DNA of 64,000 nucleotides from Mantamonas sphyraenae STR306 (taxonomy: Eukaryota; Protista; CRuMs): the NCBI GenBank assembly GCA_026936335.1, contig JAPMXV010000068.1, forward strand, positions 124,001 to 188,000, written 5' to 3'. Made by a program: the position numbers and the translations under genes. Below, piece after piece: positions 13,750 to 44,086 of the stretch. Within the stretch, counting starts at the first letter, position 1. Every line of letters starts with the position of its first letter. Below the pieces are notes generated by a model. The model had not been told where the DNA came from. It did no database searches and saw only the letters and a list, made by a program, of their open reading frames with translations.

Positions 13750-15716
13750 ATGTGGTCGGTGAACAAGGTTGATTGGGTAGCTGTGCTGCAGAGCGGGGAT
13801 CATGAACGTGTGTGTGATGCGCTGGAGGCTCAGGGAAAGGTGGGCTGCGGGAGGGAAGGGAGAGCGGGTCGGGAGGGCTGCTCACGCGTGGGGCGCAGGA
13901 GGTGAGGGTTTGTGACATGCATCTCAGAGACGAATGGGTGGATTTGCTGGGAAAGGCGCTGGGGAAGTGCACAAGCGTGCGGTCGCTGCATCTGAACAGC
14001 AGCGTCAACGGGGACAAAGGGGCAGTCGCTCTGGCAGGGGGATTGAGTGAGAACACCAGCTTGGAGACGCTGAACCTCCTGGACAACATGATCATGGACG
14101 AAGGAGCTGCCGCGTTGGCGCAGGTACTGGGCGGGAGTTGCAGCTTGCAGACACTGAACCTGCGGTACAACAGAGTCGGGGCAGAGGGAGCGGCCGCGTT
14201 GGCGCAGGCGTTGAGGGTAAACAGGAGCCTGAAGACACTGAACCTCTGGTTCAACAGCATCGGGGTGGAAGGCGCAGGAGCGCTTGCGCAGGTACTGAGC
14301 GGGAATTGCAGCTTGCGGACACTGAATCTGAAGCACAACAGGGTCGGGGCAAAAGGCGCAGAGGCACTTGCGCAGGCACTGTGTGACAATAGCAGCCTGC
14401 GGGTACTGGACCTCACGGATAACGACATCGGGCCAGAGGGAGCAAGGGCACTGGCCAATGCACTGCGTGTGAACAGCAGGTTGCAGGTGTTGGACCTGGA
14501 GAAAAACGGCCTCGGGGTGGACGGAGCAGTAGCACTGGGGAAGGCACTGAAGGAGAACAGGAGCTTGGAGGAGCTGGGGGTTTGCAAGAACAGGATCGGA
14601 GACGACGGTGCAGCAGCCCTGGGGGAGGCACTGGGTGAGAACCGCAGCCTGAAGACGCTGAGACTGGACCAAACCGGGATTGGGAGAGTGGGAGCAAAAG
14701 CACTGGCCACAGGTGTGAGTGGGAACAGCGTCTTGGAGACACTGAACCTTGAGCACAACAGCATCGAGGACGAAGGAGTAGAGGCACTGGCGCAGGCGCT
14801 GAGTGAGAGCAACAGCTTGCAGCGCTTGCAGCTCAAGTACAACGACATCGAGACGAAAGGAGCAGTGGCACTGGCCAAGGCAGTGAGGGAGAGCAGGAGC
14901 TTGGTTGCACTGGACTTTCGCAGCAACTGCCTGGGTGACAAAGGAGCAGCAGCACTTGCGCAGGCATTGCACGAGAACAGCAGCCTGGAGACACTGGGGC
15001 TTGAGGACAATAGCATCGGAGTGGATGGAGCAGTAGCACTTGGGGAGGCACTGAAGGAGAACGGCGGCTTGCACACACTGAAGCTCAGCGTCAACAGCAT
15101 CGGGGCAGAGGGAGCGGCTGCGCTGGCGCAGGCGTTGGAGGAGAACAGCAGTTTGCAGGTGCTGAGGCTTCTCAAAAGCGGTATCGGAGTGGAGGGAGCA
15201 GCAGCGTTGGCAAAGGCGATGAAAGGGAATCGGTCGTGCTGGAAGATTGAGGGGGTGGAGATGGACGCGCTGGAGAGGAACAAGGAGCAGCATGTGGCGT
15301 TTGTGGAATGCGGGGATGTGGAGAAGATGAGAGAGCTGAGGGAGTGGGGTGTGCCTGTGGACACGTTTGCAGGAGATGGAGGAAAGGAGACTGCGCTGGA
15401 GAGGGGGTTGAGGGACGGGGATGAGAGGGTGGTTGAGGTGTTGCGGGGGTGGGGGGCGAGGCCAAGGGGGGCAACGGTGGAGATGGTGAGGAAGGGAGGG
15501 TGGAGGAAGGCGTGGCATTGGATTGGGTGGGGTGGACAGGTGGATGAGGCGATGGAGGTGGCGCTGGTGATGAATGGGGAGGAGAGGGAGGTGATGTTTG
15601 GGTGTGGGGGGATGGAGGGGTATGAAGCGAGTTGTGAGTGGTGGACGGTGCCGGATGAGGTGATGGAGAGGGTGATTGGGTGGGTGGGGAGGGGAGCGGG
15701 GACGGTTGCAAGGTAA
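13750..15716 (+). CDS. Ribonuclease-inhibitor-type (NLRC3-like) LRR protein, 15 x 28-aa repeats, with ankyrin-like C-terminus
   Basis: Exon 13750-13839, intron 13840-13898 (GTGGGC...GCAG), then NxSLxxLxLxxNxIGxEGAxALAxAL repeats. May be spliced to the downstream Roco ORF (see findings). Confidence 0.88.
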
Positions 15717-15759
15717 TTTGGATAAAGGTGGACACGTGCATATTCATTATAGGACACGC

Positions 15760-42884: not shown

Positions 42885-42917
42885 ACGCGCAGAGGCGGCC
42901 AAGAATACATCTGTTCC

Positions 42918-44086
42918 ATGTCTCTTGCTGATGCGACGTTGACACAGCTTGGCGCAGGTGATGAAGAACGGTGGGAGCACGACGCGCACCGCGTGCCGCT
43001 GGCCAGTGTGGTGCACGTCGGCCCGCTGACGGGATTTGTGGAGGGCGACAAGCTCCTCGGGTATCGTGCACTGAAGGGCAGAGACCGTGGCCACGCGTTG
43101 AGTGGTCAGCTGAGGAAAGATCAGCAGGGGATCGGGTGTGCAGAGAGGGTGGGGTACGGCGAGGGGAATGGCGGGCTGAACGCGTTGGGTACGTGAATTC
43201 GTGTTTCCCTCCCAAGGCCCGCACGGCGCTGACACGGGGGTTTGCAGCACGAGATAGTTACGAACGGAGTTTGAAGGAGGCTATCGAGGACAGAGACACG
43301 TGCTATGCTGTGTGCGGGACCTTGTACTGCACGGGGGAGGATGATGAGTCCGGGGTGTTCTTGGAAGGATTGGACGACAAGACCGAGGTGGACGTGGTGA
43401 GGGAAGGCGGTCCATTGTGTGTAATCAGGTTGGAAAAGACTCGAAAGACGGGTATTTTTGACGCCAGTGGACAGCTGGAGTGGAAAAAGTCTGATTCGTC
43501 GTCGTCGTCGTCGTCGTCGTCGTCGTCGTCGTCGTCGTCGTCGTCGTCGGAGACCTCGGAGGAGACAAAGACGTTTCGTGTGCTCGTGCGCAACGTGGAG
43601 GAGAAGGAATTGCCGTGGTTGTTGCTGAAGCTGCAGAGGTGGTGCAGGATTCTGGGCGCGGTGGCACAGAACGCAAGCGGGGACATCAAGATTAAGGAGG
43701 AGGAGCGGGAGCTGGAACAGACAATCATCGTCGTCACTGTGGAGAAAGCGTACGCGTATGTGTCGGTGCTGGCATTTGCAGACATGTGCGCCATCACGCC
43801 GCTGTGTCTGGATGAGCCGCTGGGGACGAAGGGGGAGGAATTGAGGTTCAAGTGCACGCATAGCAAGGCGGGGTTGAATAACGAGGCAGTGGTGGTTATT
43901 GCTGCGCAGCTGCCTACCGCATCGTGGGCGCTGCAGATGTGCCAGGAGGGGCTGGTGAAGGACTGGAAGCCGGTGCTGAAGGGGGGTGGGGGTGGTGATT
44001 TGACGGCGGTGCTCCAGTCGAAGAGTAGCGGTGATGAGGAGCAAGGGGTGGTGCGTGACGTGGAGGCGAATGTATTGTTTTTGTGA
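42918..44086 (+). CDS. Hypothetical protein resembling the C-terminal half of the neighbouring protease, without the catalytic domain, about 369 aa
   Basis: Exon 42918-43188, intron 43189-43247 (GTACGT..CTGAC..TGCAG), exon 43248-44086. LPWLLLKLQRWCRIL / YVSVL / QEGL parallel LPWNVGKMLHYYRIL / FVAVL / QHGV. Poly-Ser (TCG)n at about 43495-43549. Confidence 0.65.

Follow-up and report, generated by a model that had tools for sequence, protein, structure and literature searches.

Does the gene cluster at positions 13750–44086 of the stretch analysed here encode a gasdermin–protease death module, a kind of system established by experiment for animals, fungi and bacteria and of which our literature search found no example from protists? 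The stretch, called the window below, comprises 64,000 nucleotides of DNA from Mantamonas sphyraenae STR306 (C68:124001–188000), in a genome of 25.06 Mb assembled in 78 contigs. An earlier note on this DNA had read the cluster as a physically linked sensor–protease–pore pathway. Our own reading, to which we give a probability of about 0.5, is that the cluster contains a duplicated death module, made up of a gasdermin-like gene and a divergent gene for a clan-CD-type protease, set within a group of CHAT-NLR and Roco-CHAT receptor genes.

The putative module consists of two orphan genes in head-to-head orientation, present in two copies in the window; a genome search found no further copies. Copy 1 comprises the clan-CD-like protease candidate (774 codons; 24583–27047, minus strand; exons 27047–26640, 26572–26355 and 26278–24583) and the gasdermin-like candidate (635 codons; 27105–29087, plus strand; exons 27105–27816 and 27895–29087). 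Copy 2 comprises the second gasdermin-like candidate (612 codons; 38642–40555, minus strand; exons 40555–39865 and 39786–38642) and the second protease candidate (702 codons; 40648–42884, plus strand; exons 40648–41049, 41113–41330 and 41399–42884). The exon models were obtained from copy-to-copy comparison together with GT–AG sites, and the resulting frames close exactly, with three exons in the protease-like gene and two in the gasdermin-like gene.

The two-gene module forms an inverted duplication with roughly 69% nucleotide identity, and the gasdermin-like copies share 50% of their amino acids in exon 1 and 45% in exon 2. In every exon of the pair the synonymous divergence (dS) exceeds 1 and the ratio of nonsynonymous to synonymous divergence (dN/dS) lies between 0.17 and 0.35 (0.17–0.31 in the protease-like gene and 0.27–0.35 in the gasdermin-like gene); both genes are therefore real and under purifying selection, and the duplication is old. 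The divergent pairing, in which the start codons are separated by 57 bp in one copy and 92 bp in the other, has been kept through this duplication despite a dS above 1. Each module lies 0.6–2.9 kb from a CHAT-NLR gene, and the nearer of these, NLR1, starts 561 bp away. The copies differ in two details: in protease-like copy 1 an internal stretch of about 35 amino acids (acidic and Lys-rich; 25100–25500) is tandemly duplicated, which is not the case in copy 2, and gasdermin-like copy 1 ends in a hydrophobic segment resembling a tail anchor (29021–29087) that is absent from copy 2 (38642–38700).

In the mechanism that we propose, the first ~237 residues of the pore-former would be a gasdermin-like membrane-inserting domain, and the ~400 residues that follow would hold the protein inactive or localise it. 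The divergent neighbour would begin with a clan-CD-type cysteine protease domain, its His encoded in exon 1 and its Cys in exon 2, and its orphan C-terminal region may have a sensing or regulatory role. On the model of bacterial gasdermin (bGSDM)–protease operons and of fungal het-Q1/het-Q2, a trigger would activate the protease, which would then cleave the gasdermin-like protein at a point between the domains; pores formed by the released N-domain would kill the cell. The CHAT-NB-ARC-TPR and LRR-Roc-CHAT receptors nearby may feed into the same death effectors or act in parallel with them. Along this chain we infer the gasdermin fold, the activity of the orphan protease, the cleavage, the pore formation and the link from the NLRs to the pair.

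How closely does the first of the two genes resemble a gasdermin? Its product is laid out as an N-domain of ~237 amino acids, a β-rich segment, a helical region, a Ser/Thr-rich linker and, in copy 1, the hydrophobic tail; the N-domain and the C-terminal ~400 residues are separated by a junction rich in proline, in which a DPYRP motif is conserved. Segments with β-amphipathic character are found in both copies at residues 56–72, 76–86 and 154–165, and Cys7 is invariant within an otherwise variable N terminus. In a feature search of the ESM-Atlas with exon 1, the top three clusters all belonged to Bact_GSDM (PF26164), with a score of 0.94 and 190–192 of 256 features shared; 11 of the 30 hits fell in the Bact_GSDM set, and the others included unnamed Ascomycota clusters. 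The earlier note had named this very family in advance, which makes a chance match less likely, because chance would be expected to pick out a random family and not a pre-named one. Taken together, these features make a gasdermin fold for the N-domain fairly probable in our view. The identity of the whole protein as a gasdermin, for which the Atlas features, the amphipathic β segments and the genomic context speak, is unproven.

The evidence on the divergent partner is at the level of motifs. The two longest invariant blocks of its N-domain are KENVLLILY..AHGV, in exon 1, and NSVLYLRETCF.G, in exon 2. The His block precedes the Cys block by about 60 residues, which is the clan-CD order, and each appears to end a hydrophobic strand; a generic His/Cys pattern of this type occurs 3 times in 167,602 residues of open reading frames (ORFs). 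Exon 2, which carries the Cys, is also the most constrained part of the gene (dN/dS 0.17). The C-terminal region encoded by exon 3 is an orphan of ~500–560 amino acids, and a word-index search with it returned no homologue. These motifs suggest that the partner is a clan-CD protease, an assignment that is likewise unproven.

A considerable body of results weighs against the death-module reading. With the gene models searched exon by exon, Pfam (in a version without PF26164), PADLOC and NCBIfam returned nothing meaningful for any exon of the pair at E ≤ 10; across the whole genome PF04598 had no match at the same threshold, and PF00656 gave nothing relevant. HMMER with a profile of gasdermin-like exon 1 produced 0 hits among 1.84 billion representative proteins, profile and exon searches of the PDB with the pair yielded noise (NKIRAS1, PD-L1 and a Fab chain among others) and no gasdermin, and tblastn of the gasdermin-like core against plasmids gave one chance hit to a polyketide synthase. 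The AlphaFold2 (AF2) model of gasdermin-like exon 1, built on a two-sequence alignment, was unusable, being mostly helical with a predicted local distance difference test (pLDDT) of 34.5 and a predicted TM score (pTM) of 0.22. The Atlas recognition value for the same exon was 1868 against 2300, and a low value weakens a high score; moreover, the protein is 2.5 times as long as bacterial or fungal gasdermins. For the protease exons, neither the hidden Markov model (HMM) libraries nor the PDB gave a C14, C13, C11, C50 or CHAT match, hhalign against the local CHAT alignment returned non-significant values (P = 0.55 and 0.32) with the His blocks aligned, and an Atlas search of exon 1 gave no lead, with a score of 0.76. 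Finally, no RNA run is listed for the organism, and the collections hold no genome of a relative in which linkage could be followed. Of the two candidate pore-formers put forward earlier, what stands is a pair of conserved genes with Bact_GSDM neighbours in the Atlas, but without an HMM or structure match.

Are the two genes, then, lineage-specific orphans of some other function, with chance resemblances to gasdermins and proteases, at a site that is simply prone to duplication and fast-evolving, next to a CHAT cluster that is itself real? The blank HMM, PDB and exhaustive homology searches, the poor, helical AF2 model and an Atlas recognition value too low for a high score to be relied on would all fit this explanation, and so would a region full of recent duplications with the housekeeping genes DIM1 and LEO1 in its midst. 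It accounts less well for an Atlas match that fell on the pre-named family where a random one would be expected, for His and Cys blocks that are the best-conserved parts of the protease-like N-domain, and for a tight divergent pairing that survived an old duplication. We consider it rather unlikely.

The reading as a death module draws support from its surroundings, because the adjacent CHAT domains are predicted to be true clan-CD folds and because bacteria and fungi offer precedents. The N termini of the two NLRs in the cluster score 14.8–18.4 bits with the CHAT profile, under the Pfam cut-off of 24 bits, and are homologous to the CHAT domain of the Roco-type gene (BLASTP E = 4e-12, with His and Cys aligned). 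In an alignment of 20 CHAT paralogues, H65, H69, N102 and C104 are invariant. An AF2 model based on 20 paralogues reached a pLDDT of 77.4 and a pTM of 0.81, and Foldseek matched it best to the SAVED-CHAT structure 8TL0 (E = 1e-9, TM 0.78–0.80, 23–25% identity), with further matches to CED-3, caspases 3, 6, 7, 8 and 9, MALT1, separase, C11 and legumain. On this modelling, the CHAT domains of the island have the caspase–hemoglobinase (clan-CD) fold with a His/Cys dyad. A PADLOC scan of the CHAT proteins was uninformative.

Two of these domains belong to NLR genes. NLR1 (CHAT-NB-ARC-DUF7779-TPR; 19075–24021, minus strand) is one open frame of 1648 amino acids with 19 TPR units of 129 nucleotides each (NB-ARC 33.3 bits, TPR_12 872 bits, CHAT 14.8 bits). 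Its paralogue NLR2 (CHAT-NB-ARC-TPR; 32208–35803, minus strand; NB-ARC 35.6 bits, CHAT 15.9–18.4 bits) has about 8 TPR units and is 88.7% identical to it. Both NB-ARC domains exceed the cut-off of 23.5 bits and are followed by DUF7779, and the P-loop GARGMGKT can be read in translation. The two genes lie in a direct duplication, 18725–24309 to 31862–36011, whose 89–90% identity marks it as recent by sequence comparison. The duplication brought along a remnant of the 3′ end of the Roco-type CHAT (31855–32055, plus strand; CHAT profile E = 1.2e-19, model positions 118–186), a stub within an open frame of only 146 amino acids. At 33171–33187, NLR2 carries a TG (2-nucleotide) insertion, present in 1 of 17 near-identical TPR repeat units, that shifts the frame after the second TPR unit; it would represent either a frameshifted gene on its way to becoming a pseudogene or a mistake in the assembly. 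In a database search with the NB-ARC region of NLR1 (residues 110–720), the sole match was a TPR protein of an actinobacterial FxSxx-COOH system (E = 2e-7, 23% identity); the search brought up no eukaryotic relative. That protein resembles NLR1 in its NB-ARC, DUF7779 and TPR_12/TPR_10 domains and differs in being bacterial and without CHAT; the similarity is very distant.

The third CHAT domain belongs to an LRR(RNI-type)-LRR-Roc-CHAT gene at 13750–19065 on the plus strand. Its left part is an RNI-type LRR array (13902–15716; Pfam LRR_6, 225 bits) and its right part an ORF (15676–19065) with LRR_14, a Roc domain at 18.3 bits, below the cut-off of 27, and a CHAT domain that passes its cut-off with 24.2 bits when scored over the whole protein and 26.8 bits when scored alone. 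The translation contains the Roc motifs G1 (GDGDQGKT, for GxxxxGKT), G3 (DFGGQ, for DxxG) and G4 (THVD) and the CHAT dyad AHM...LNGC. The best PDB matches of the Roc domain are weak (Roco2 4WNR, E = 0.03; LRRK2 Roc, E = 0.3–0.5), and no COR model matched the ORF. The two frames probably encode one LRR-Roc-CHAT protein of ~1,700 amino acids, if two introns are spliced: an AT-rich GT..AG interval of 40 nucleotides at ~15713–15752, which would fuse the LRR and Roco frames in phase, and, before it, a first intron following the ATG at 13750. We favour a single protein because the interval is in phase and because LRR and CHAT paralogues to the right of the window are single ORFs. At 40 nucleotides, the interval is shorter than the introns of 63–78 nucleotides elsewhere in the window.

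These paralogues are four more giant LRR-CHAT genes (1798–2009 amino acids), at positions 198729–204143, 210511–216537, 218077–223470 and ~234 kb of the contig; the receptor cluster thus extends over ~100 kb, past the right edge of the window. Across the genome, the CHAT-like matches number at least 28 and the NB-ARC matches at least 20, both counts being lower bounds; 10 of the 28 CHAT-like matches lie on the window's contig, which accounts for 1.45% of the genome. By these counts and domain orders, the CHAT-NB-ARC/TPR and LRR/Roc-CHAT genes form large lineage-specific receptor families.

Against this background the inventory given in the earlier note can be revised. Of its five clan CD protease domains, the three CHAT domains are borne out by Pfam, homology and AF2/Foldseek, whereas the two caspase-like ones have neither an HMM nor a structure match; moreover, since two segmental duplications are involved, the five reduce to three lineages, namely the Roco-CHAT gene, the NLR-CHAT pair and the orphan pair. 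Two of its three STAND ATPases have NB-ARC domains (33.3 and 35.6 bits), and the third reaches only a sub-threshold AAA_16 score. The LRR and TPR sensor arrays are as described there, with LRR_6 at 225 bits and TPR_12 at up to 872 bits. What holds of the clustered pathway as a whole is a dense cluster of CHAT sensor-proteases; its pore-forming arm and the two extra caspases are the parts that we infer.

With such proteases at hand, the gasdermin-like effectors could be real and yet be activated by the neighbouring CHAT proteins, whether those of the CHAT-NB-ARC-TPR genes or that of the LRR-Roc-CHAT gene, the divergent partner then being a regulator, adaptor or inhibitor. The bacterial precedent is direct: the protease that cuts the bGSDM of Runella, a proven activator of a bacterial gasdermin, is of the Roc-COR-CHAT type (Johnson et al., bioRxiv 10.1101/2021.06.07.447441 / Science 2022), and in Podospora a TPR-CHAT protein processes a gasdermin (PMC8851545). 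The CHAT domains of the island are structurally supported by AF2 and Foldseek and their dyad is invariant, NLR1 starts close to one module at the distance given above, and no homology to proteases could be detected in the orphan partner. Against this, most of the CHAT-like loci, at least 28 in the genome, are far from a gasdermin-like gene, NLR2 is frameshifted, and the conserved His and Cys blocks of the partner, as far as motifs can tell, argue for catalysis. We hold activation by the CHAT proteins to be quite improbable and keep the paired orphan gene as the candidate activating protease.

How does the proposed module compare with known systems? Among bacterial gasdermins, 43 of 50 lie beside proteases, mostly of the C14 or CHAT type, and the proteins have a conserved N-terminal cysteine (bioRxiv 10.1101/2021.06.07.447441). 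The likeness to the present locus lies in a pore-former gene beside a clan-CD protease gene, in proteases fused to sensor-type domains (Roc, LRR, TPR and NACHT), in Cys7 of the gasdermin-like protein, which recalls the N-terminal cysteine, and in the ESM feature neighbours, which are bGSDM clusters. By contrast, the locus described here is eukaryotic and has spliceosomal introns; a bGSDM has ~250–280 amino acids with an inhibitory peptide of ~20 amino acids, compared with 612–635 amino acids and a large C-terminal part here; and the paired protease matches neither CHAT nor C14, with no hit in PADLOC or NCBIfam.

The fungal parallel is similar in kind. In fungi, about 80% of the gasdermins occur in clusters with S8 or CHAT proteases, some of them NLRs (Clave et al. 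2022, PMC8851545). As here, het-Q1/het-Q2 and its relatives are two-gene gasdermin–protease clusters, often with the genes adjacent; some of the proteases stand at the N terminus of NLR-type proteins or are fused to TPRs; and cell death in allorecognition or immunity is the function that has been suggested (PMC8851545). The differences are that the host is not recognisably a fungus (its DIM1 is 55–58% identical to the best homologues), that HMMER finds no similarity to fungal gasdermins and that the protease is an orphan.

The animal axis from NLR through caspase-1/4/5/11 to GSDMD is alike in principle, in that a STAND ATPase with repeat sensors and a clan-CD protease accompany a candidate gasdermin with a long C-terminal region. 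It differs in that the protease here is fused directly to an NB-ARC/TPR or LRR/Roc sensor and is of the CHAT and not the C14 type, that no CARD or PYD adaptors were seen in this locus, and that PF04598 has no match. The SAVED-CHAT protein of type III CRISPR/CBASS-like signalling (8TL0) is the best structural match of the island CHAT domains, and its partner domain is SAVED, where the domains here are joined to NB-ARC/TPR or LRR/Roc. The island motifs, AHM or THG with LNGC or LNAC, also depart from the common HG and SAC forms.

A more specific form of the death-module reading is that the locus holds a complete gasdermin module of a protist that is neither fungus nor animal, too divergent for sequence methods, with a large C-terminal regulator on the gasdermin and a new clan-CD protease family paired head-to-head with it, among Roco-CHAT and CHAT-NLR receptors. 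We hold this form tentatively, at somewhat short of an even chance. If correct, it would extend the gasdermin–protease module to a deeply separate eukaryote, with a protease family and a gasdermin architecture that would both be new. A single locus would then connect a candidate executioner with Roco-CHAT and CHAT-NLR receptors and make inflammasome-like evolution testable. The reading would also imply that the succession of sensor, caspase-type protease and gasdermin is either ancestral to eukaryotes or has been repeatedly re-assembled. Many orphan pairs in the NLR islands of protists might then be hidden death effectors. Even without the pair, the locus brings to light a large family of protist receptors, of NLR-like and Roco-like kinds, whose effector is modelled as a CHAT protease fold.

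The remaining genes of the island lie between and beside these elements, with intergenic spacings of 0–830 bp in the cluster. The ORF at 29155–31437 (plus strand), whose ATG lies 67 bp past the stop of gasdermin-like copy 1, encodes a candidate P-loop NTPase with a helical, TPR-like C terminus. Its scores for AAA_16 (21 bits, cut-off 32.6) and TPR_12 (18.7 bits) are both sub-threshold, a Walker A motif (GPTKSGKT) and a Walker B motif (VMVLDG) can be read by eye in the translation, and a PDB search gave generic P-loop matches only; a third P-loop NTPase, and with it a candidate third STAND, is a plausible assignment from these motifs. The open frame at 42971–44086 (plus strand) lacks an ATG close to its start and has no Pfam match. 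It had been taken for a paralogue without the protease, and we reject this, as BLASTP to protease exon 3 gave only E = 0.014–0.15.

The two housekeeping genes reported within the island are both present. DIM1, the 18S rRNA dimethyladenosine transferase (35804–36922, minus strand), scores 216.5 bits with Pfam RrnaAD and has 7117 homologues, the best of which are spread over plants, animals and assorted protists. LEO1, a subunit of the Paf1 complex (37750–38553, plus strand), scores 95.9 bits with PF04004 at 37753–38184. Together with the short GT–AG introns of the window (63–78 nucleotides, with CTRAC-type branch sites), these genes identify the host as a eukaryote.

The window has a composition of about 60% G+C. 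Over positions 1–24000, the GC skew is extreme, from +0.3 to +0.48 over plus-strand genes and −0.6 over the minus-strand NLR; the receptor (NLR and Roco) genes have very G-rich coding strands and encode proteins in which G, E, V, R and W abound. Little GC skew is seen in the orphan pair or in the right half of the window. To the right of the island, positions 44125–63227 are occupied by seven tandem units of ~2.8 kb that are 95–99% identical. Each unit contains a minus-strand ORF of ~640 amino acids with an F-box-like N terminus and no Pfam match, and the units are separated from one another by sub-repeats of 159 nucleotides.

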